Origin: Podarcis tiliguerta
Taxonomy: Eukaryota
Reading direction: 5' to 3' (one strand)
DNA length: 64,000 nt
NCBI GenBank assembly: GCA_965153285.1
Contig: OZ229114.1
The position numbers and the translations under genes were made by a program. Within the stretch, counting starts at the first letter, position 1; every line of letters begins with the position of its first letter. This document shows, piece by piece, positions 6,112 through 36,100 of the stretch. The notes below the pieces were generated by a model. That model ran no database searches. It had not been told where the DNA came from and saw nothing but the letters and a program-made list of their open reading frames with translations.

Positions 6112-9100
6112 GTATGTAATATGTTTTTATCTGAATATAAACACCTTTAAATAGATGTGTTTTCAGCTTTGTTTTTAAAGGAAGACATTTGGTAGTTCTA
6201 CTCTGGTTAAATTTGCGCAAAAATTCCTTTAATGTAGGAGAAAGAGGATTATATTACAGGTAAGCAAAGCTGCACCAAGTGATGCAGCTGCAGTTGTTTC
6301 AAATAATAACCCTACACAGTTTTGTTGAATGCCATTTTTTGGTCCTTCCATTTTTAAAACAAGCACTACCTACTTTGCTTATTATGGAGCTCTCTTGAGT
6401 GTTTAGTTCCTTTTCAATGAATTTTATTAGTTTTTGCTATGATTCAAAAAGAATGGTGTTTCAAGAAAAGACACCAAACCACTTGATTAGCATTTTTAGA
6501 GATGAAATGGAGTGCTGTATAAATTGGAATCTCATTTCTACTGATCAGTATTTGTACTGTATCTTTTGACATAGAATCAAGATGTTGTGCTACAAGGGAT
6601 AAAAGTAAAACGTAGATCGAACAAAGCTGTTTAGGAAGTCCATGAGTGGGATCAAGTAATATAACCTTGATCAATGAAACAGGCTTGACAATACCTATGA
6701 CACAAATGGCATAAGGCTTGATGTGAAGTCAACTAGACATGTGATGGTGAAGTTGCATAGACTACAGTGGCTATCCCGATCCATATACTGCCATAACTGG
6801 GGAAAGGCACTGCTAGCCACAGAATTCCCTTGGACCTCTAATGACAAAGGTCTATCTAAACTACATACCTGATTGTTCAGAGGGAGTGCAGTATCTTCAG
6901 GATGTAAGAACCTACCCACAGAGCCTCTTTCTTACCAGGTTTCAAACTCAGTTTGTTGGCCCTTCTCCAGTCCACCACTGCATTCAGGCATAGATCCAGG
7001 ACTTGCACAGCCTTTCCTGATCCAGATGTTAAGGAGGTGTAGTAGATATAGATGTTAAATAGCACTGGGGACCAAATTGTGCCTTGCAGAATCACATAAC
7101 ACAAGTGCAGGAGGCCATAGAACAGTGTTGTCCCACTGTTACACTCCGAACTCACCCACATAGGTAGGAACAATGCTACTGTAATACATTGCCTCCTATA
7201 CTGATCATGAACAGTTGATGTAGGAAGATATGGTCAGTGGGGTCAAAAACCACTGAGAGATCAAGTAATTGTAACAGTGTTGCATTTTCGCCGTCCCTCT
7301 TCTGAGGGTGACAAAGACTGATTCAATCATGAAACCAGGCCTGAACCCAGATTGAATTGAATCTAGACACTCAGTGTACTCAAACAACACTTGCCTGATG
7401 TACTTCATTTGATGGCAGAATTTGCATATTTAGATGTAGAGTTCTATCTAGACCTTTTGCAAAAAAACTTTTTTTCTCAGTGGATAAAAAAATATCTTTG
7501 ATGTTATTTTTGAAGTTTGCATGAATAAATGCATTCATATACTTGAAAGGAATTTCAAGTCATTCATTCTAATCTTTGCCCTCTAGCTTTATTATCTTGG
7601 GCAGATTTCAGTCAGTCTCCTCACTGAAACCTCCAGAAAGAGTTGCCATAAGTTTCTTGGGCAAGGGACTTTGTTGCACAAGCATTAGTGTAAATTAATT
7701 TTCCTGTGATCCTTCCAAAAGGTTCTCTGCCATAACTAGAACTCAGTGCTTTTCCTTCATTTGCTTCAGGAAACTTTTTTCCTTCTGCTAGCTTTTCCAC
7801 TATATTTTTCACTGTCTATGTATAGACATTTTGAGGTTTATTCCTTTAGCTAAAACATTTGTTTAACTGAAATGGGGGTGTAGGGAAATATTGGTTTACA
7901 GGTGCTAGAATTATTTTAGCTGTGTGGTTTTATTTACTGCTGCAGTGTTTGCTTAATTATTTACCTAAGCCCTTTTTTCCTTGTTCAGATTTGGCTTGAG
8001 CCTATGAAACCTGTAATTAAACAAATACGAAGTAAGTATATATACTATTTCTATTAGTGTTTCTTTCTAGAATTCTAGCAACTTTTTGGTGCTATTCTTA
8101 ACATGGCCACATTTGGAAGATTAAGGCAGGATATCTATGTGCTGTTTGCACCCACGTGCAGCCCCTTTATTGCGTCTTTGTACAAGCAGTGAAACCATCC
8201 AGGAAGCCACAGTTAACTGTAGCTTCCTGTTAAGTCTGAACTGAGAACTATGGTTCATGTCTCCCAATAAGCCAGGATTTCAGAGCATACTTTTAACTGT
8301 GGTAAGGTGCATGCAGCTCATGCCTATGTTACTTTATTAAGCCGGAATTTGATTGCCTGACTTTACACATCTTGGTACCCTCCAAAAGTTTTGGGCTACA
8401 GCTCTCATCATTCCCAGCTATCATGGTCAATGGTGAAGATGATAGAATGAATGAATGAATAAGTTTATTACGGTCATAGACCAGAAGAAAAGAAAAAAGC
8501 ATAAAAACAACAGTAGTTTACGAGGGAATGATGGTGTCAATTAAAAGTTGTAAAATTATACATAAAAACAATACACATATGCACACACACCCACACACAC
8601 GCACATATATACTCATATATGCGCTACAATATATGTGTAGACTTTAAAAAAGGGGGGGGGCTTGTCCAAGGGTCAGATCTTTTACTTTTTTACAACTAAT
8701 GCCCTCCGCTTGATCGCGGCCGCAGAAAACTTGGCCACTTTCAGTGTTACTTCTGGGTTTTTATCTCCTAGTAGGATTTTCAGCCGCTGAGATTCAGATC
8801 GACCTGGGAATTTCTGAACGATAGGGGAGATAAACAGTGACCTGATATCCCCGTAGAGGTCGCAGTGTAACAACACATGTGAAGCCGTTTCCGCCTCCTT
8901 CAGACCACATGGGCAAACTCGTTCGGCATAGGGTGTGCCCTCGTATCTGCCCTTTAGTAAGGCAGATGGCAGTACATCAAATCTGGTAAGGGTAAACGCC
9001 CGCCTATATTTTGCGATTTGTAGATCCAGCAGATATGGGGTTAGATTAAACCCTTTTCCATAATCTTGGATAGCTGGATATTTATCTATCTTGCTCATAT

Positions 9101-12100
9101 GGTCCTGAAGCTCTATATCTCCTATTCGCTGGCTCACCATCATTTTAGCCTTTTCAAAACCTGCGGCTATAAGTTCCTGTGGGGAAAGCCCCAGGCCCTT
9201 CAATTTTTCATAAAGCGACAATCTCCATTTAGACTGGAACGGGTCTAGTAAAGTCAATGGAGCCACTCCCACTGGGAAAAATATGAGTTTTAGCCAGAAG
9301 TGAATCTTCAGGATCCATATCCTGGCATTAATAGGGAGCTGACCTACCTCCAGCCTAATGGCAGTGTTGGAGACACAGGTAGGTAACCCTAGTAGGGAGC
9401 GGTAAAATTTAGTTTGTACAGATTCCAGGGACTTGAGTTTTTGGCAATTAAATATCTGGGTGCCATACATCAGTTGTGGAAGTATTTTTGCAACAAAGAC
9501 CTGGGAGGCGGCAGGAACATATTGACCTCCTTTTCTGTAAAAGAATCTTATGATAGCTCTAAAAGATCTTTGCGCATTTACAATGGAATTCTTAATCTGA
9601 TGGCACCAAGATCCCTTCTCATCAAAAATTATTCCAAGATATCTAAAAGATGTTACTTGCTCAATAGGTTGGTTATTAATTTTCCATTTATGTCGGAGTT
9701 TTCTCTTGGGGAACACCATAATTTTTGATTTAGTGTAATTTATTATTAGGTGTTCAGCTTCGCAGTACTCTGTAAGAGCTCGTAAAAGTTTTCTTAGACC
9801 CACACAAGAGAAGGAAATAAGTGCCGCATCATCTGCGTACAAAAGGACTGGGATTGGTATATTGTTTAGGTTTGGGGAATGAGTACTTGCTTCCTCCATC
9901 TTTCCGACTAAGGAGTTTATATAGAAGTTGAATAGAATAGGGGCAAGAACACAGCCTTGCTTGACACCATGGAAACTTTGGATTTCCTTTGATAGGTTCC
10001 CATAACGGTCGCATCTAACACGGATCCGAGTATTTTCATGTAGTCTACGGATAAGAAGCAAAAGACGTCTATCGATGTTTGTGGCATTTAATTTTTCCCA
10101 AAGTCTGTGCCGGGGTATCGAATCGAAAGCTGATTTGAAATCTATAAAGGCTACATAGAGAGAGCCTCCTTTCTTTGAGGTGTATTTCTCCACTAGATGT
10201 TGCAATACCAGTCCTTGGTCTAGAGTTGATCTATGTGCCCTGAAACCAGCCTGGGCTTCCTTTAAGACGTGCTCCTGTTCCAGCCAGTCCGCAAACTTTT
10301 CACGTAAGTGAGTTGCATAAAGTTTGCTGATGATGCTTAAGAGACTGATTGGTCTGTAATTGGCTGGATCAAGTTTACAGCCTTTCTTAAATATGGGAAC
10401 GATGATTGCCAATCCCCAGTCCTCTGGTATTATTGCTGTTTGATCTATGCTGGTGAAAAGGGTGGCAAGGACTGGGGCCCACCAGTCAATATTGGCTTTG
10501 AGAAGCTCAGGAGAGATATTATCTGCTCCCGGGGCTTTTCTATGTTTGAGTGCCTGAATAAGCCTCCTAATCTCCGCAACCGACACCGGGGGCCACTCAT
10601 CACCTGCCGCACACTGTATTAGTGGCTGTGTCAAAGGCAGAGCTGGATATAGAGATTGGAAAAATGCCTCCCAAGTCCCTGCAGGTATAGTATACTCCAC
10701 TTCTGAGGAAGTAGATCGCACTCCATTTGCTACCAGTCTCCAGAAGGTGGCCGAATCTCTCTCTCTGGATGCATCTATTAGGCATTTCCATTCTCTTTTC
10801 TGTGCCAGGAGTTTTTTGTTTTTGATCAGAATTTTATAGTTTCGTTTATCTTCAAACCAGCCCGTGGGGAGTTGGGGTAAATTGGCAGATCTATAATTCT
10901 TGTATTTTTTCAGTAAGTTTAGCTTCATGTCCTGACATTCTTGATCAAACCAGGGTTTGGAGTTTTTATATACTGAAGATTGCCTACTTGGCCTGTTCCT
11001 TTTTTCCTTCAGGGAATCTTGAAGGAGTGAAATTAACTCCTGAAATAAATTTATCTTTAGTTCATGGCTAGAGGAAGTTATGAGGTTTTCTCTCTTAGTA
11101 AGGAATTCCTTTGAGCATAGCCTACTTGAAATTTCCTTATGCAGTTCATCTGTCCATCTGATACGCGAATATCTGAGCTCCAAAGCTGTAGGGCTCGAAT
11201 GCTCGATTTTCTCAGCGCAGGATAAATCCTTTCCCGCAGCTACGAGTGCACTTAATGGCAGATGGTCACTGTCTAAGCGCTCCTCCACTTTGCATTCCAG
11301 AACTTTGTTTTGAAGATCATACGACACGATTATATAGTCAATTGTGGAGGCGCCATTGTTAGATATAAATGTGAATTCTCCGACCTTCTCCCCCTCTGTA
11401 CGGCCATTTAGTATAACCAAGTCCAACTTGTTGACCAAGTGTAGTAGGCATAAGCCGGCATAATTGCAGCCTTTATCCTTTGAGACTCTAGCTGGTATTG
11501 GGTGGGTTTCCTCTATAATGGGGACTGTTTCGTGGAAATGGGCATACAAAGCCTCATCAGATTGTCCAGTTCTGGCATTTAGGTCGCCTGCCACCACTAC
11601 AGAGGCATCAGGAAATTGATTTGATAGTTTGTCAAGATACTGTTCTAACTGAGCCCAATTGTTTCTTATCAATCTTTTCTCTCTTTGTGGGGGTAGGTAT
11701 ACGTTAATCAGCAGCAAGCTGTGGGTTCTCCACTGTACTTGCACAGCTGTGGCCAGATGGTCTAGTGGGTCTAGTTTTTTAAATATGGCCCTTAGCCTTG
11801 TTGAGATTAGGGTAACTAACCCACCTTTAACTCGCCCCCCTCTAGTACTTAAAAGACCTGGGAGGGAGAACGCAGAAAAACCATTTAGCTCCACTTCACT
11901 TGTGCTCCAGGTCTCCTGGAGAAACACAATGTCATGTCTCTGGATGTATTTAGCAAAGGATTGGTCAGAAACCCTCTTTTGCCAACCTGCAATATTCCAA
12001 GTTAGCAAGGCAAGGTTGCACGTTGTCTTGCCAAACATTGATCTTAGTCAATTTGCCTTTAAAAGATTTTTTGGGCCTATCTTTTTATCTGTTAGTTGGA

Positions 12101-15100
12101 TTTCATTCATTTTGGCAATGTCCATAGATGTATTGTCGCCCAGGTACTCAATGGAGTCAATTGAAGGGTGCAGCGTGCTAACATTAGTGATCAGAACTCC
12201 TTTTTTTGGCGAATCTACCTTGAGGTGTTCTATTTGACTGATACCAAGTTCATCCTCATCCAGGTATCTCATGCTGGTCCAAGAGCGCGTTGTGGTTGTC
12301 ATAGGGATGGTTTCCTTCTTAGATGGTAGATTGTTGCTGTCCCTTACGCACTGTGTTAGATCTGTTGCTGTCAGGTTTATCTCTGCAGCTGCAGAGGTAT
12401 TATAAAGGTAGTCTTTCATGGTTGCCATAAGGATGGTTTCCTTCTTAGATGGTAGTTTGTCCCTTGCGCACTGTGTTAGATCTGTTGTTAACAGGTTTAT
12501 CTCTGCAATTGCAGAGGTATTATAAGAGTAATCTTTCATGGGGTCTGTCTTGGCTTTTTCAGAGAGGTTCTCTTTCTTTAATTGGTCCGTTGCCGGTTCT
12601 TCCTCTCTTACTTTTTCCTGAGCATTCATCTCTGTTAGCTTATTTCTAAGGGTCTCCAATCTTCTCAAGATCTCAGATTGGGCAAGGGAAGGCAACAATC
12701 CAAACTGATTTATTAATGCCTTTTCTTCTGGATAGAAGTTATCCGTCCCCTCATTGGGCAGTCTCATCTCCTGTCTTAGTTTCAAGGACCCTTGCTCAGT
12801 ATGTTCCAGTTTGTCTTTTGAGTGTCCTCTCTCCTCCTTTGGTTTACAAGAAAATCTTATCTCAGCTGTCGTAAACTCATCAGGGAACAATTTCAAACAT
12901 GTGCTGTTTTCAAAGAATCTTGTTACCGTTATCCTTTTCTTTAACAGCAAATGTCTTGATCTATATATATATTTAGCCAAGATTTGATCTTTGAAGGAGG
13001 CAATCACTCGCAGAGAGTATCCATTGTAGAATATGAAATCTACTGAGGTAATGTCCTTTAATTTTATTTTCCCTGGCAGCATATCATCTAAAGTATTCAC
13101 AAAATGCACCGAGCGTTCTTCCTGTGTAAGGAAGCCCTTTGGCTTCGGGTAGTTAAGAAATGCTAACTTCCTATCTGCCAACATCAGTTTCCATCCTTTA
13201 TCCTGGGGCAAATCTTGCCCTGCTACTGGCTCATCTTGAGATCTGCCATAATCAATGGTATGGGGTGAGTCTTCTTTAATATTTATGGATCCTTGGGGTT
13301 TCAGCATAGAGCACCCGGGTAGTGATTCCGTTTCCTCACTTGTTTTGTTAGGCAGCGATGATGTTTCTTTCAAAGACTTCAGCTGGATCTTTTTTCCTGG
13401 ATCCACACTGTTGTTCTCTCTGCTGCCATGTATAGCAGGTTTGTTAGAGTTTGTTTTTGATTTTGTTGGGATCAGCTTATATAGTCTTTTCCAGCATACT
13501 TTACATGCACGCCGGTTTATAACAGATTTCCTTGCAATTTTTATGTTCTTACTTTTCTTTTTAATTTCAGCTTTCTTCTTATGGGATCTCTTACTGATGC
13601 CTCGCTTCTTTTGATTTACTTCAATAGGAAATTCAGTTTTAGGGACAGATACATACAACCCTATGTCCTTTCCTTGTTGTAAATGATTTTCCGCTGCTGA
13701 TCCTTGTGTGCACTTGCTGGTCGCTGGTTGCTTTGTATATTCTGGCTCTTGAGGGGTGGTTGGTGGATTGACACCATGAAATTCTGAGCCTTTAGCTTGG
13801 AGGGGATAATTTTCCACTAATGTCAGAAGCAGCCCATTTGTTATTGTTAAGTATTTTTTCATAGCTGCCAGATCCAGATTTATAGAGAGCAGCCAGTCCT
13901 GAGGATAGCAGTCATTGTTTTCCGTCTGGGAGCCCATAGATGAAGTCTGGGATTTCTGGGAGTTTCGGGTTTCTTCCTGTAGCTCTGAAGATAATACCTC
14001 AGCCAAGACTATTTCATGGGCCAGGCTCATTGTATTTCTATTTTGGTTGTTATTCTCCGTGTCCTGTATTCCTCTAGAGAAGGTTGAGTGATCTTGAGCA
14101 GCAGAGGGAAAAGGAAGAGCCTCATCCTGCTTCAACTCAACCATCTCAGCCATCTTTTGCCCGTTTCCATTTCCATTCTCGTTGTCCCTTGTATGTAAAA
14201 GGTATTGCGTGATTTTACTCTGTTTCTCATAACACTCCTGGAACAATGGGCTTGTCGCTATCCCCAGGTCCCTACATTTCTTTCTAGTAAGTACCATTTG
14301 TAAATCTTTGTTGCCAATCAGGGTTATTCTTCCTATTTCAAAAACTATGCCTCTTAGGAAGTCGAAAGCTCCACCCAGCTATAGACTGAGGTCCAGATTG
14401 AGGCAAGATTTGGGATAGCTGTTTGTAGTTTGTAATTTGATAGCTTGTAGTTCGGAGCGTAACACGAACTCTGCAGCTAGTTCGGCGGCCATCCACTATG
14501 TGGTGATACTTCCGGACGGTGTTGGAAAACTGGGAATAAATCACTTGAACACAGGGCGAACTCCCCTCTCCGGCAGCCTCCTTCGACTAGCTCTCCTTCT
14601 GCACCGGCGTCCTGTCGCGTTGGGTCTCGGCTCCCCTCCCCGCCCAGGCAATAAAACTATTAGCTCTAAAACTCTAAAACTATTAGCTTCAAAATCTCAG
14701 AGGGCAGCAAGGGGTTGCTGCTCCCTAGTCAGATTGAGCAGTAAAACAATAAAACACTAACTAAACAATAAAACAATAAAACAATAAAACACTAACTAAA
14801 AGTAAAGAGAAGCGAGGAGGTGATAAAACAGCTGGTAGGACGTTAAAACTAAGAGTTTAAAACCAAGAGGTGGCTAAAAAAAAAAAAACTGCTAAAAAAC
14901 TTAACTGAGAGCAGAAGAATCTGACCAAGCTGCAGCCTCCGTCGCCATCATGGTGAAGATGATAGAAATTTTAGTCCAAGACATATGAAGGACACTGTTG
15001 GGGAAGACCGTTCTAGAGATTTGAAGCAAATGAAGATAATCTGTTTTGCATGACACACAGGTTCACTTAATCAATGGAATTGGAGAACATTCATATGGAA

Positions 15101-27100: not shown

Positions 27101-30100
27101 GACTCATGGGATTCAGAAACTGCAGCCCCATTAGACATAAACCTCTTTTTCAACAACCCCTTTGCTGAGGCTACTAGAGAGAATTTCACTCTTGATTTTC
27201 AGAATAATCTTAAGAATCTCACCCAGGAAGATAAAACAGAAGACACACACACAAGCCATTAATATTTTGGTTGATATTACGTAAATTTATGCTTTCAGGA
27301 ATCTGGTTTTGAAAGAGAAAAGATAATGTAGATTGTTTCTGACCTGGTTCATTCTAGTGATTGGATTTCAAATTTATGTCCTTTTTAAAAATCCTTATCC
27401 CAATTTTTCTCAAGCCATCATAAATTAGTTGCTACTTTGAAGTGTAGATGTCAGTGGTGCAGACTAGCCATTATAATTTTTCTAATGTATTGTACTATGC
27501 ATTTTTTATCACCCAGCAATTGTTTAAACCATCTGTGGTGAAGGTCACTGCATCACTGAATTTTGAACTTAGGTACACTTTGCAAATAACAGACCCTCTA
27601 CAAAGCATCGCTGCTGATGAGCAGTAAATGTCTTGAAAGGCCATTGGCATATTTTGTGCTTCCTTGTTGGTGCTTTGTTAGAAATTTAACACATTACTCT
27701 GCAGAAACAAGCCTATAACATGGATAGGGAACCTGTGGTCCTCCATATGCAGTTGGACTACAAATCACATCATGCATGGCTATTGGCCTTGGGAAATAGA
27801 GTGGAACAGCATCTGGAGGGCCACAGATTCCTCACCCCTGCTGTAACTTAACTGAATCAATATGAAAGGTTTGCTTGAGCTTTTATTTGAAGATGGTACT
27901 ACTTCAAGGAAATGATCTTATTATTGTTAGACTATGAATATACAAGTGGTATTGAAAGACTATATTATGGCAGTAAGAGAGTTGGCAAACCTGGTTCTCT
28001 CAGGTCTCCTGATAGACACTGAAGAATGTATTTAAGTTGCAAAGCAGGAAAGCAAACCTTGTACAGGAAATAAACTAAAATACTGTTAGGGCTATGTCTG
28101 AAAGGATTATATCTTGAGTTAATTAAATAGGCTTGTGTATCTTTCCATTATAATTTCCTAATTATGCCTGTGTGAAAGGGAAGATTGTGCAATAATCACC
28201 AGATTTTCTGTGGTGGTGGTGGTGGAGAACCAGGCACATCTGGTTTGTTTACTCTGTGATAATTGTGTTTTCACTGTGGATTTCCTATCATACTTTAAAA
28301 AACCACTTTCATAATCCTCCTGACCAAATTCTTATTAGACTGATTTTATCAGTGTGCAGCTCAGCATAATGGAGCGATTGCCTTCCGGCTGCCAATTAGT
28401 TTGCTTTTTGTTCTGAGTCTTTCCACATACAAGATTCACTTTCACTAGTAGTTTATCATACTTGTAGTATGGAGGGAAGGGAAGATGGCGACGGAGACAG
28501 CTGCCTAATCAGACTCCTCCGCTTTTAGTTAAGTTTTTAAGTAGTTTTTAAGTAGTTTTTACGTAGTTTTTAGCCACCTCTTGGTTTTAAACTCAGCTTT
28601 AACGTTTTATTAGCTGTTTTATTACCTCCTCGCTTCACTTCGCTTTTAGTTTATTGTTTTATTGTTTTACTCCCCAATTTGTCGAGGGAGCAGCAACCCC
28701 TCACTGATTTATTGGCATTTGGCTGTGGGAGGTTGCCTACTGCAACAAGACAATCAGGGAAACAGAGTGGAGGCCGCCGAGAGAAGCGGGCAGGAGTCTC
28801 TTCCAGTCCTATGTGGATATTCTGCAACCCACCCATTGAATTCCCCCACCGGCCAGATGAGTCAGCGCTTCGCAGATAAGGAATAACAAACGACGCCATC
28901 AATCTTGACCGCCGGAGCAGGAAGACTAGAAGGCAAGCGTTGGTTAAAATTACTCCTGGGCACTGGATCACCTCTGCGGTAGCTGTAGCCTGGAGACAGG
29001 GCCTGAGCGGAGTTTTAATACTCGGGGAAGGGAAAGTGCCAAGCCGAAGTTTTGGAGCCAGGTCAGGGGAGGACCAGAGGAGATTATAGGCCTGGGCGGG
29101 CAGTTGAACCCGACGGGCTTGAGGACCCAGCCTCCCTCTTGAGACGTCTTCTCCAGCTGCACTTCGTCATCCTAACAGCGAGAGTGGAAAGCTGTGAGGC
29201 TGTGAGGCTTCGGGTTGCTGGAATTACACTCTGAGAGGTGAAGAAGTCTTTTTGGCAGAGAGGGGTGAAGAGAGAGGAGACGGAAGTTTAAATTAAACAA
29301 AACAAAGCCTGGAAATTCACAAAGCACTCTTCAACGAACTGCGGAGAAATCCCTGTAGTTAAATACTCAGCTGTACAGCTAAATCATTGACTGTGGTAGG
29401 AAGTCCCCTTCTTCTCTTCTGTATTACTCACATTATTTAGCTCATATCTACTGTGGCTATGGGCAAGAGGAAACGCCTCAGAGAAGCAGAGGAATTACTG
29501 CTTCTCCCTAGCCCCAAGCTACAAGCTAAAGGAAGAAGAGATCAGCCAAATTTTCAAGCAGCAGTTACCACATACAATAGATTTCTTCCACTAAGTGACT
29601 TGGATGTAGCTAATAACATTCCCAAGTCCCAAAATACCACCTTACACAATTGTAACTTAACGAGCACTCCCAACAAGGGTGGGCCCGATGTGGATGGGGA
29701 AAAGATCCAGGATAAGGAGAACCAGCTGGGAAATGAGTCCTCCCATTTACAACTAGTCATTAGGACACTGGACTGCATATTTAAAAAGATAGACTTTCTG
29801 ACGTGCTCAATTTCCAAGCTAACGGAAAAAGTGATGGATATGGACGCCAAAATTGCCCTCAAAAATAACTACCAGAGGGGACCTCCAGTGATAGCCCCAT
29901 CAAACTCTGGGGCAAAGGGGATGAGAAAATACAAACTAAACGACCTCATGTGTAAGCAAAATCTAACATTGCAACCTAAGAAGGTGTGCCTAACGATAAG
30001 GTCTGAGATTTGGGACTGGTCAAGCTTGGAAGGAGCTAAAATTGCCCTAAGTAAAATCTTGAGAACAAGCATAGTTCATATTGATCTTCATGCCTTACTC

Positions 30101-33100
30101 CCGCTAACTCAATCAAATGGCCCTTACAAAGTTATTTTAGCCTTCCGTTCGCTGAGACTACCCTTATTAATAATAAGACAAAAATGGAAATTCATAAAAA
30201 CAAAAATCATACCCACAAGGGTTTTTGCGGACAGCATAGTAAAACCACTACTTGTGGAAAAAGAGAGAGAGACATTAGATCCAGGAACAAGCTCTACAAA
30301 ATCGCCAGACAAAGAGATGTTGCTTTCCCCACAGAGAACGGAGGAGATTGCCTGCAGTCCACATCCAGGAACGAACTTGGGTGATTCCAGAATATCTAAT
30401 GATGAAAGCGCCCTTATGAATTCATTTGACGAACTACAGTCACAAGAAAAAGAAAAAATAATAAATAAATTAGATAAACTAAGAGAGAAGATGTCTCAGG
30501 CCAAAAGCAAAATAGGAAACAAAGAAATTCAAACCAACAGTGCCATTGGAGGCTCAGTGGACCTTCTCAAATTTAGCCCACAGCCCCAAAATAGGCCCAT
30601 AAAATCCAAGGCAACGATACAGACAATCGTCTCGCCACCCCTATTAGTCAATCTGGAACCAGCTCTTCCGGCACCAGCCGGAATGGTCACACCTACTAAA
30701 GAACAGCAAAATGTAAACAAAATTTCGACACACTCCTCAATGCCTGACCTGGAGTCATCATTATCGGGCGGAGAATCTCTAGTTGACGATTTAGAAGCTC
30801 AAACCGCTATCGATATGGACTGGACAGAAGACCCCTTGGGCCATATAAATAAGATGACATACCCACGGAAGGGAAATCTAAGAATAGTTAAAACTTGTAC
30901 CGACTTAATCTCTGCTCCCCTAGGTGATAAGCTCTCTGATAAAACAAGGGATTTCAGAGAGGAGACCAGACCAAATCAGGACACTACCCCTATAGGACCG
31001 GCTGAGCAGAGCATAATTACAAATAGCTCAAGAGGTACATCTGCGCCAAAAGGAGAGAAGTCATCTACTATTAGTCAAAAGAAAATTACTGACTTCTTTA
31101 AATCTGACAACCCACCAAGGCCAGCGTTCTCCCCTTCTCTATTGTGACTACCCAAACCTCAGTCAAATCCTCCCCCGTTCTCCCTTTTAAGCTGGAATAT
31201 AGCAGGTTGGAAGGGGAAAAAATCTGACCCGGACTTTGTAAAACTAATAAACTCACACCAAGTAATTCTCTTGCAGGAAACATGGGAAGAGGGGAGAGTA
31301 GATATTAATGGTTTTGATGTTACATCATTACCGGCATGCCCGTCTACTAAAGGAGGCCGGCCCAGAGGAGGATTAGTTATAGCAATTTCTTTGAAAATAC
31401 AGGCAAAACTCACGCTTGTAAATGCTTCCACCTTTGCAATTACAGCCCTGATTACGGGGGAAAACTTTGAACTTGTTATAACAAATGTTTATCTTCCTCC
31501 TGGAGGCAATATTGCAGACTTATGCAATAAATGGGGAACCTTGGAGGAACATCTCACTTTTTGCCACTCCAAATACCCCAATATACCCAATGTTATAGCA
31601 GGGGACTTCAACGCTCGCATTGCAACAAACTGGGAGTCTTTAATCAAAGCCAAATGGTGGATAACCCCAGAATTCATTAATGACCTCTCCCTCCATAATC
31701 AAAGACTTTCCAAAGACAAAAGGGTAAATGAAGCGGGAACCCTTCTTTACCAATTGGTACTACGTCTAAACTTAGTGATTCTAAACGGGAACTGCCTGCC
31801 TGACGTACCGGGCGAGTTTACACACATAAGCTCCTCTGCAAACAGTGTCCTGGATTATATATTAGTATCTCATGACATATTCCCCAGAGTTTCCCATTTC
31901 AAAGTTGAAAATATTCATCTGAGCGACCACCTACCGTTGGTCGCCACAATGACTATAGACTGGACCCCAGATGGAAACAGACACCCAACACATCTGATTA
32001 TGAACTCAGTATTGCAAATCAAAAGTGTAAAGTGGTCCGAATTACAGGCCCAAAAATACTCAGCATATTTCCAACAAGGACTAAAACAAGCATATTCAGG
32101 CTTAACCGAGGATTATTATGATTATGACCAAACTTTAAGACTATTCTCGAATCTGTCGGAAGATCTAACGTCTTTTTTCTCTGTCCCGACGCATAAAATA
32201 AATCGAACACAAAGGAAGATAGGTGCATTGTGGTTCAATAGTGCTTGTAAACAGGCTAGACAACTTCTCGGTAACATCTACAAAGAGTATAAAGCCTCCG
32301 GGGCAACGGTCTTGCCAAAAGAATATTTCCAAGCAAAATCGGCCTACAAGCAAATTCAAAAGGGAGCCAGACAGGAATGGCAAGTGAATCAATGGCGAGC
32401 AATCATAGAAGCCTCATCATCACGGAACTCCAGACAATTTTGGCTCCTGGTAAATAAAAGAACTAAAAGATACCCTTTGACTATTATTCCTGCCCCGGTT
32501 TGGGAATCTTACTTAAAAAATTACTTTGCCACAACTGACTGTATTGCTAACACAAGAGATGAATTTCAACATCAGCTTCCCCTCTGGCCCCCCACCGATC
32601 CAGAAGACATCCATGACCTGATCGTTAAACTCAAAACAGGGAAAGCGCCTGGGCCAGACCTGATCCCGGCAGAAGCAATAAAATACCACGCGGACTGGTG
32701 GGCCAAAGTTCTGGCGACCATCTTCGATGCCGTTAACAACTCTGGAATGATCCCGGAAGTATGGAAGGACGCTGTTATCGTTCCAATCCACAAAAAGGGC
32801 TCACCAGATGACCCGGGGAATTACAGAAACATCAGTCTGCTCTCAATAGTGGGGAAACTGTATGCCCGCTTCCTGTTGAACAGACTTAACCAATGGGCCG
32901 AAGAGAAAAAATTAATTGGGCCCGAACAAGCTGGATTCCGCCCAAAACAGTCAACAATTAATCACATTCTAACTTTACAGCATCTTGCCTGGAAATACTC
33001 CACCCCAAAGGGTGGCCAACTCTGTGTAGCATTCATTGACCTAAAGGCAGCATTCGATAGTATCCCCAGGAGCATCCTCTGGGAAAAACTCATCCGCTGG

Positions 33101-36100
33101 GGCATTGACAGAAGGCTTCTCTGGCTAATAATCAAACTCCATGAGAACTCAGCGGCCAGAGTGAGATTCACCCCGGAGGGTGATCTCACGAATTCAATTC
33201 CCATTAACAGAGGTGTCCGACAGGGTTGTATATTGGCTCCACTCCTGTTCAATTTGTTCATAAGTGACATGAGGACTCCCCTAATAGAGGCCCAAGAAAG
33301 GATTCATGCACCCCGCCTAGCACTCTATCGCTGCCCCTTGTTACTATATGCGGATGACGCAGTCATTCTTTCTTTTTCTAGAGTAGGTCTCAGGAGGGCC
33401 CTAAAAATTTTTGGATCATACTGTAGCGCAAACTCCCTTACAATTAATTATGGAAAATCTAAGATCCTGATTTTCTCAAAGAGCCGGAAACTCCATAATT
33501 GGAGAATTGATGGGAGAGTCATCGAACAAGTCTATAGATTCCAATATTTGGGAGTTTGGTTACAACATAACCTCAGATGGAAGGCCCATGTAGCCTATGT
33601 TACAAATAGAGCCAAAGCTATCTCCTTGGCGATCTTGCGATTCTTCTTCACCGATGGGGCCCTTCATATCCCATCGGCGCTGAAAGTCTTCAAGGCCAAG
33701 GTGATCCCGACAATAGCTTATGCCATCTCAATCTGGGGGACCCTTGCCAACCTATCTCACCTGGAGGTCATTCAAAATCAGTTTTTAAGAGGGATATTGA
33801 AACTACCCAACTGTGTAAGTAATACAGCGTTACGCATGGAACTTAATATTGTATCCCTGGAAAATGCTCTGTGGAAGCACATACTCTGTCATTGGTTATC
33901 TCTATGGCACAATCTCCCAAACTTGTACTTGATACAATGTATGTGGAGAGATGATTTCCAGAGCCCATGGGTAAAAAATTTACAGCTGAAAATTACGGCA
34001 ATGGGAATTTCCCCATCCAAATTATTAGAGCAGGACATAGTCCCAGCTAAAAGAACAGTAACCTGTAAGCTAGAGGAGATGGACTTGCAGCAGAAAATGA
34101 TCTTGGGCAATGGTACCTGCTCACCTCTAAATCTTGGTTTATTACCCCTCTTAAGGCTCCCAAACTATTTGAATTCCTTAACTTCCTCAGCTCATAGATA
34201 TGCCTTTGTAAAGGCAAGATTCAACACCTTCCCATCGAACGTGCTGAGAAATAGATTCTCCAATGGACAGATATCGCTCTTATGTGATTGTAACAGTGGG
34301 GCACCGGAATCGTTGCATCACATAATTTTTGACTGTGCTTTTCACCTACCGGCCAGGAGCAAGTTTCTTGCTCAATATCTTAAGGGAATTGCCGATGACA
34401 CAATTGAAGCCAAACTGAGATATCTACTAATTGATGATGACCCCCTAAAATCACTCATGGTTGCCAGATTCCTGATCAGCGTCCTATCCCTAAAGAAGAG
34501 AAACGGTCTCCTGTGTGATTCGGACAACCCCTTTAAACCATGACCTATGTTTTAGGTGATATCACCATTGTTTTAAATCATGATCTATGTTTTGGGCGAT
34601 ATCACCATTGATACCCCTGATTAATTTATGAGTAGAGGGTGATGTATAGGTTACAAATTTATTGCAATGTATGGTGGTGGTTCCTGTTTTGTATGATGGT
34701 GGTTTTTGTTTTTGTTTTGCTTTGGTTACTGTTTGTCTTTTGTAAGCTTTGGCGATTTTAAATTTGGAGTTTTAAGTATAATATGTTGGTATGGGAAACT
34801 GTCGTGTAACGGGCCAATGGCCGTAATAAAGATCAATCCAATCTTGTAGTGATATGCTCCATGTGCCTGAAATGGTCAAATCAGCAAGAATTTATACTAG
34901 TTGTGGTAGTAGCACATTAAATCATACATATAGTAAACCCGCAACTTAACCCGGGGGTTATGTTCAAAGGATAGCGCCTGAAGCCAAATCACATAAAGGC
35001 AAAACACACTGGGTTCAAATGCGGGTGGGATTGCCAAAGTCTTTTCCCCAGGACATCCCATTTTTTAAAAAGTGGTGTTGTTGTTGTTTTGGCCAAACAC
35101 ATAAAGCTGGATGTGCACAAGTTGCTGGCTTACTGTACCATGGAATGCAATCTTTAGATGTCAGATTTTTTAAAAATCAAGACATCTCTGCCCCTCTACT
35201 TTTTCAGAGAAGTACCAGGACTCTGTAGGGCCAGGTTGTGCTTCATGTGGGTATGTGGAGAATATCTGCAAATATTCTATATTTATCTTTGATTTTAAGT
35301 ATTGCTAAGTAAAGCTATGTCGGTGATGCCATAAAGTTATATTACTAGATTAAAGGGTTTTTTCCCCACTTTTGCCAACCATAATTCAGAAAGGACTTTG
35401 CTTAAGATTTTAAAGTTAAGAATACATGCACCTTTGCTGATACAGACCAGGAGTTCTAAAATTAGATATTGGTCATGATCAGTGACTGGTGGTACATGCT
35501 GAGATTGTACATATAACTTCAGTTAGTAAATGGTAATGTGAGGTAATTGTATTTCTTCTCAGAAACAAATCTATGGAATCCACTTCTGAACTCTTGGCAC
35601 AGTACAGCTAATTTCCTGTTAAAGCTTCCTATTGAATAGATCAGTTCAGTTACTAAAATCAAACAACCTTTTCTTTTCCATTTGGAGCATTGCACAACAC
35701 CCATATTTTATTCAAAACCATCATAATTAAATACAAGATTGGTCAAATGCAGGTGCATTTTCTAGATGTGCCTGTTAACTTCCCCAGAGGCTTTTCTAGT
35801 AGCTGTTGTTCTTAAATATGTTGTATGTTTTGAAATTAAGTAAAATATTCAGGATTTGTTTGGATTCCATGCCCTTCTGTTTTGTAAGTACTTGTAGGGT
35901 ACTTCCCTATGAACATCTAACATTTTTTTAAAAAATAGTATTTTTTAACATCATAGTTTTTCTGTTTTAAACACATTAAATTGCCTTCATTCCCAATATG
36001 AGATTGTTCCTGAACTCTCAAACTTTTAGGTAAGTCTGAACCTGTTATTCATTCTTAGTGAAATATAGTTAAAAATAAATTTCACAATACCATACTCAGC

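Follow-up and report, generated by a model that had tools for sequence, protein, structure and literature searches.

How does a long interspersed nuclear element (LINE) make the enzyme encoded by its second open reading frame (ORF), when that frame lacks its own start codon? This question is raised by LINE B, a full-length element within 64,000 nucleotides of Podarcis tiliguerta DNA (contig OZ229114.1 of assembly GCA_965153285.1; this whole stretch is referred to as the window), which also contains a second full-length element, LINE A. Translation of ORF2 from bicistronic LINE RNAs is still unsettled, human L1 included, and LINE B represents a simple test case. Because its ORF2 continues in the frame of ORF1 past a single UGA-CUA, without a start codon, the enzyme is probably produced by readthrough of the stop. 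The features on which this proposal depends are as follows.

28469-34842, + strand: LINE B, full-length insertion, with a perfect 8-bp target-site duplication, CTTGTAGT, on either side (28461-28468 and 34843-34850)
29459-31147, + strand: LINE B ORF1, 562 aa, from the ATG at 29459 to the TGA at 31145-31147
31145-31150, + strand: junction hexamer TGA CTA, the ORF1 stop and the first codon of the ORF2 frame, a candidate leaky-stop context
31148-34543, + strand: LINE B ORF2, 1131 codons, without its own start codon
31949-31951, + strand: first in-frame ATG of the ORF2 frame, seven codons past S259-D260-H261

An enzyme frame without a start codon

Codon reading of LINE B bore out the original prediction that the ORF1 stop is followed in frame, and without a spacer, by CTA: the 3' end of ORF1 reads TCT CTA TTG TGA, and the CTA at 31148-31150 directly succeeds it. 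It was equally accurate in placing the ATG at 31949 after the SDH motif, such that initiation at this AUG would lose the endonuclease. From the stop to the W-N of the endonuclease, the frame contains neither an AUG nor a near-cognate codon, the first of these being an ATA situated past W-N. The frame itself encodes an apurinic/apyrimidinic endonuclease (APE) followed by a reverse transcriptase (RT), with Pfam matches to Exo_endo_phos at residues 14-261 (E 3e-10) and RVT_1 at residues 547-804 (E 1e-35), and a CxCx9Hx4C motif near the C-terminus (residues 1046-1063). The Pro-rich composition of the ORF1 tail continues across the stop into the ORF2 frame, and the sequence to either side of the UGA looks like a single continuous linker. 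The predicted fusion would contain 562+1+1131 = 1694 aa, in agreement with the length of approximately 1694 aa originally proposed.

The stop itself matches the leaky-stop hexamer that is best known in vertebrates. Work in human cells derived and tested a consensus for high basal readthrough, UGA CUA, and in these cells the short motif by itself yields percent-level readthrough (PMC4359377); the description of the junction as a leaky-stop context agrees with this consensus. The motif operates best with a G at +7, but also functions without one, as in CACNA2D4, which has UGA CUA U (PMC4359377).

The other LINE in the window enables this junction to be compared between two divergent elements.

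8445-14950, - strand: LINE A, full-length insertion, with a perfect 14-bp duplication, TATCATCTTCACCA, at 14964-14951 and 8444-8431
12048-14297, - strand: ORF1 of LINE A (749 aa), which aligns only marginally with its LINE B counterpart (22% identity, E 0.013)
12045-12050, - strand: TGA CTA hexamer at the LINE A junction, in the frame of ORF2
12036-12038, - strand: LINE A ATG, three codons past the stop and 13 codons ahead of the W of WNIAGW, in a weak Kozak context
8682-12047, - strand: ORF2 frame of LINE A, of 1121 codons and a stop, with 36% identity to LINE B ORF2

UGA with CUA at +4 to +6 is present in both elements (31145-31150 in LINE B and 12050-12045 in LINE A). When the two were compared by anchoring on the stop, TGA CTA was the sole 6/6 identity within 150 nt to either side, the flanks being 18-33% identical. 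The retention of this hexamer while its surroundings diverged favours readthrough, as does the shared position of the stop in ORF1 homologues: P0002 and P0003 terminate at the aligned position of the LINE B stop, 16-17 residues past a conserved Q-x-K-I-T-D-F-F/L. The expectation that LINE A would have the same junction held for the hexamer and the frame, but not for the lack of a start codon, as the LINE A junction reads TGA CTA AGA TCA ATG, with the ATG placed 9 nt past the stop. A further relative, P0236, has an ORF1-like region and ORF2 within one ORF, which likewise favours readthrough.

Recurrence of the layout in other lineages

Close relatives of the two lizard elements (P0001-P0014) were compared as proteins. 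Protein searches identified related families in lacertid-type data, which are 54-96% identical to LINE B and 42-48% identical to LINE A. Two of these, P0005 (96%) and P0007 (60%), were called from the codon corresponding to the internal TTG at 31271, which implies that they contain no ATG, GTG or TTG from the upstream in-frame stop to this position. The AUG-less state consequently looks to be common to related families with 60-96% identity. In database ORF2 proteins, an N-terminal M is unusable as evidence for an AUG, as gene callers render GTG and TTG starts as M, P0005 being an example.

Scans of metagenomes and GTDB identified only distant relatives, with at most 28% identity over their full length. 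All metagenome relatives with an intact long ORF2 whose junction could be read were counted for the AUG-less layout, with L010 truncated by the end of its contig. The junctions are located as follows.

L001:330, L002:963, L009:5980 and L010:775: junctions of distant relatives, with UAG as the stop and always G at +4

In all four, an upstream long ORF, a single stop and an AUG-less ORF2 share one frame. The stop is followed by similar sequence in several cases, with UAG GAC AG in L002 and L010, and UAG GCC AG in L001. The ORF2s are intact, at 1084-1152 codons. ORF2 identity among the six lineages (A, B, L001, L002, L009 and L010) is 22-36%. The possibility that hosts of the metagenome elements read UAG as a sense codon was rejected, given that each element has a single in-frame TAG in approximately 1200-1500 codons.

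The repetition of this in-frame, single-stop layout in six deeply divergent lineages substantiates the earlier argument against a chance nonsense mutation at the junction. A nonsense mutation arising at the LINE B junction after insertion was separately ruled out by the perfect duplications, the intact ORFs, the sharing of the junction by two lineages and the same stop position in the ORF1 homologues. As the LINE B copy is intact and its target-site duplication perfect, the layout observed in the window is the form that transposed.

The frames of the two ORFs are also informative. ORF1 is found in a different frame only in one family (L003, L004 and L017), and this family carries its own ATG. 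Overall, ORF1 and ORF2 are in frame in six of the seven two-ORF lineages (p = 0.007 if independent), and in each of the five AUG-less lineages in which an ORF1 is visible ((1/3)^5 = 0.004 if frames were free), these p-values being optimistic because the lineages share ancestry. The lack of an AUG is linked to the in-frame arrangement, an association that readthrough would predict, and that reinitiation would not.

Readthrough and its alternatives

The proposed mechanism begins with the synthesis of the ORF1 protein (ORF1p) through normal initiation, and its termination at the UGA. A small share of ribosomes, perhaps a few percent, would decode the UGA in its UGA-CUA context as a sense codon, and continue in frame via the Pro-rich linker into the endonuclease and reverse transcriptase. 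The product would be an ORF1-ORF2 fusion of approximately 1694 aa, resembling retroviral Gag-Pol, with the readthrough rate setting the ratio of ORF1p to ORF2p, and the ORF1 moiety tethering the enzyme to ORF1p-coated RNA. We infer the readthrough, its rate and the fusion protein from the observed architecture, its recurrence across lineages and its match to a known motif. On this sequence evidence, we regard the chances that LINE B ORF2 is expressed as a readthrough fusion with ORF1 as about even. The broader proposal, that a widespread LINE lineage, extending from lacertids to the unknown eukaryotes represented by metagenome contigs, makes its APE-RT only as a readthrough fusion, using UGA-CUA in lizards and UAG-G elsewhere, is advanced more tentatively, as something that may well not hold; if it did, animal non-LTR retrotransposons would have a Gag-Pol strategy.

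Multiple observations weigh against readthrough. LINE B has C and LINE A has A at +7, such that both are without the G of the strongest motif. A stable structure approximately 8 nt past the stop was absent from the 80-120-nt folds of all six lineages (z from -2.1 to +0.9), and neither the stem-loop nor the pseudoknot that would be expected 6-10 nt past the stop in structure-stimulated readthrough was found. The distant relatives carry UAG-G, rather than UGA-CUA, and to our knowledge UAG-G needs a downstream structure to be leaky. The in-frame state is perhaps partly inherited, in which case the lineages are not independent trials of the association. Nor do we know of any LINE for which an ORF1-ORF2 fusion protein has been demonstrated. 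The Met past the LINE A stop aligns with a Met in P0012 (48% identical), which fits reinitiation, and L1 and SART1, the LINEs for which ORF2 translation has been studied, both use termination-reinitiation (PMC5972666). The gag-pol-style expression originally predicted for ORF2 hence retains in its favour the recurring layout and the known leaky motif, but is opposed by the LINE A ATG, the missing structure at approximately 8 nt, the missing +7 G and the L1 and SART1 precedents.

The alternative that these precedents suggest is termination-dependent reinitiation, in which ORF1p is released at the UGA and the same ribosome restarts downstream to make a separate ORF2p, from the AUG in LINE A and from a non-AUG codon in LINE B. 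L1 ORF2 expression was reportedly found by Alisch et al. in 2006 to be independent of its AUG. Only this type of mechanism has experimental support in LINEs, through the UAAUG and downstream structure of SART1, and the unconventional termination-reinitiation of L1 (PMC5972666; PMC3894237). The position of the LINE A ATG is what would be expected from it, and the ribosome could be held by a hairpin over the WNIAGW codons, which can form in both lizard LINEs.

31178-31218, + strand: LINE B hairpin over the L-S/T-W-N-I-A-G-W codons, from 33 nt past the T of TGA (z -1.6)
11979-12008, - strand: LINE A 11-bp hairpin over codons of the WNIAGW region, from 42 nt past the T of TGA (z -1.9)

The outer pairs of these hairpins differ between the elements, yet still pair, and at GCA GGT the two have identical synonymous bases. 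As this pattern comes from two sequences, each with a weak z score, a shared downstream hairpin is at most suggestive; its distance from the stop would fit a SART1-like downstream element better than a stimulator of readthrough. However, AUG-less elements expressed by reinitiation need not share the frame of ORF1, yet all five do; the exact UGA-CUA in both lizard lineages is left unexplained, when the flanks have been randomised; and LINE B offers neither an AUG nor a near-cognate codon ahead of the catalytic W-N. Reinitiation is therefore a possibility to be taken seriously, but one that we consider doubtful as the explanation for these elements, and it and readthrough are not mutually exclusive.

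Other routes into ORF2 appear improbable. These include an internal ribosome entry site (IRES) or non-AUG initiation within the junction, decoding of the UGA as selenocysteine, and adenosine-to-inosine editing that would convert the stop to UGG. A 2013 review raised the possibility of IRES-like entry at non-AUG codons for LINEs (PMC3894237), and in both lizard LINEs the UGA can be part of a small 5-bp stem, but there is no spacer to house an IRES, the stop is not within an extended duplex that could serve as an editing substrate, and the stop in the distant relatives is UAG, not UGA. Selenocysteine was set aside because a search of Rfam (E<=1) over LINEs A and B gave no match to a selenocysteine insertion sequence, nor to any other recoding element. 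Less probable still is a junction without function, whereby LINE B lost its ORF2 start and was mobilised in trans, with the shared TGA-CTA and frame reflecting coincidence or inheritance. Defective LINEs are indeed mobilised in trans, the DNA-level comparison involved two copies in this genome, and LINE A and several relatives appear to carry a Met ahead of the endonuclease. Yet the stop-free 1131-codon ORF2 and perfect duplication of LINE B argue for selection on ORF2 in cis, the AUG-less state extends to families 60-96% identical, and the layout is repeated in four distant lineages with intact ORF2s. Readthrough of the UGA is the explanation that we favour, at about even odds.

The two lizard LINEs as elements

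Both LINEs have the hallmarks of APE-type elements: each ends in a tail of short repeats and is flanked by a perfect target-site duplication, 8 bp long in LINE B and 14 bp long in LINE A. They are of similar size, at approximately 6.4 kb for LINE B, in which both ORFs are intact, and approximately 6.5 kb for LINE A. From its sequence, LINE B is an active-looking, young, two-ORF, APE-type non-LTR retrotransposon (one that lacks long terminal repeats). The 3' tails consist of GRCCGTAATAAA followed by (CAATC)2 in LINE B (34812-34842, + strand) and by (ATTC)n in LINE A (8477-8445, - strand); GRCCGTAATAAA with short tandem units is a 3' recognition-type tail common to both elements. An imperfect direct repeat of approximately 32 nt (atgacctatgttttaggtgatatcaccattg and atgatctatgttttgggcgatatcaccattg) is located at 34540-34610 in LINE B, beginning at the ORF2 stop.

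The elements also have a 5' module in common.

28484-28701, + strand: 5' module shared by LINE A and LINE B, 79-89% identical to 14949-14710 (- strand) and beginning ATGGCGACGGAG

This similarity of 79-89% over approximately 220 bp is found in elements with proteins that match at only 22-36%, and suggests that a promoter module may have been exchanged or captured between LINE families. In LINE B, 15 additional bases, tggagggaagggaag, at 28470-28484 separate the duplication from the shared 5' terminus, whereas LINE A has only tg at this position. These bases may be untemplated 5' additions.

ORF1 proteins and related families

The LINE B ORF1 was modelled with AlphaFold, which predicted a long helix spanning residues 85-135, an RRM fold spanning residues 168-266, and a low-confidence tail of approximately 200 residues that reaches the stop and is probably disordered. 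The RRM fold had structural matches with Z of approximately 7 to many RRMs, including the central domain of human L1 ORF1p (2w7a), a value in the range that structure comparison rates as common, such that the support is moderate. With this moderate support, the model identifies LINE B ORF1p as a coiled-coil and RRM RNA-binding protein, as is typical of LINE ORF1s. A Pfam search of all the ORF1s, from the LINEs and their relatives, returned no domain match. Homologues of the LINE B ORF1 were found at 30-39% identity, including one annotated in Zootoca vivipara (P0002) and P0003, and a protein search also returned a fragment that was 93% identical. The conserved motif that precedes the stop in these homologues resembles a canonical PIP box.

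31076-31099, + strand: PIP-box-like QKKITDFF, 16 codons ahead of the ORF1 stop, kept in P0002 and P0003

No PIP-box-like motif was present in either ORF of LINE A. Were the LINE B fusion produced by readthrough, this motif would come directly ahead of the endonuclease.

The wider group to which these elements belong is very large, with a profile search returning approximately 30,000 representatives below 1e-30. Among them, P0236 (UYV74751.1), from the pseudoscorpion Cordylochernes scorpioides, is annotated as a single ORF of 1353 aa in which a 2A-like IEQNPGP and then an ORF1-like coiled-coil/RRM region precede the APE-RT, although this gene model may hide a stop. A scan of viral contigs for relatives found none. 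Eukaryotic LINE contigs (L081-L096) were found binned in bacterial metagenome-assembled genomes (Acinetobacter, Kluyvera, Metamycoplasmataceae and others), likely owing to contamination of the assemblies with DNA from hosts or other eukaryotes.

Comparison with known systems

The two lizard LINEs do not correspond to several established groups. Classical RTE elements, reportedly described by Malik and Eickbush in 1998, are said to be compact, with an ORF1 that is very short or missing, while the ORF1s of LINE B and LINE A encode 562 aa and 749 aa, respectively. The Vingi clade is characterised by a single ORF, with no ORF1 (PMC3894237), unlike the two ORFs divided by a stop in LINEs A and B. 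Identity as lizard L2 elements is unlikely, as the GC content of ORF2 is 43-44%, compared with approximately 55% reported for lizard L2, although this constitutes weak evidence.

A literature search for readthrough in vertebrate LINEs found no example, and the 2013 review of LINE protein biogenesis omits readthrough (PMC3894237). The concept of LINE readthrough has already been suggested, for the Paramecium group 3 elements discussed below; what appear to be new are a vertebrate LINE with UGA-CUA, and the recurrence of the layout in distant relatives. This recurrence suggests an old and overlooked expression strategy, rather than an oddity of lizards. If readthrough were confirmed, LINE B would become the first animal LINE with a demonstrated Gag-Pol-like fusion, and a natural system for studying how a LINE sets the ratio of ORF1p to ORF2p. 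ORF2p would then join the ribonucleoprotein through its own ORF1 moiety, providing one explanation of cis-preference.

Human L1 and the silkworm SART1 resemble the lizard LINEs in having a bicistronic RNA on which ORF2 is coupled to ORF1 termination, with the addition of a downstream RNA structure in SART1, and the stop-to-AUG spacing of LINE A is similar to theirs. They nevertheless differ from LINE B, as the ORFs of L1 are separated by a 63-nt spacer and those of SART1 overlap at UAAUG, whereas LINE B has neither spacer nor AUG, and the relation between its reading frames is conserved. In Arabidopsis LINEs of the plant L1 clade (Ta11/ATLN), in-frame ORFs are reported to be split by an amber UAG, with suppression of this stop proposed. 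The Paramecium group 3 LINEs are likewise two-ORF APE-type elements with both ORFs in one frame, for which readthrough of the ORF1 stop was suggested by the authors (Guerin et al. 2017, PMC5405496). These belong to another LINE clade in a ciliate host with a different genetic code, and lack the UGA-CUA context, and the suggestion was likewise made from sequence alone.

At the level of the motif, the counterparts of the LINE junctions are the UGA-CUA(G) of LDHB, MDH1 and AQP4, and the leaky UGA-C stop of alphaviruses, with which the stop and the +4 to +6 bases are identical. Besides the +7 base, which is not the optimal G in either LINE, the cellular genes differ in that their extension is a short tail, rather than an enzyme of 1131 aa, and the readthrough values were obtained in human cells, while the host of the LINEs is a reptile. 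At the level of organisation, the closest parallel is the gag-UAG-pol of gammaretroviruses of the murine leukaemia virus type. LINE B differs from these in being a non-LTR element with UGA-CUA instead of UAG-G, in encoding no protease, and in having no detected pseudoknot or stem-loop at 8 nt. What they share is an RNA-binding structural ORF and a reverse transcriptase ORF in the same frame with a single stop between them, an enzyme that has no start codon, and a fusion that would set the ratio of structural protein to enzyme.

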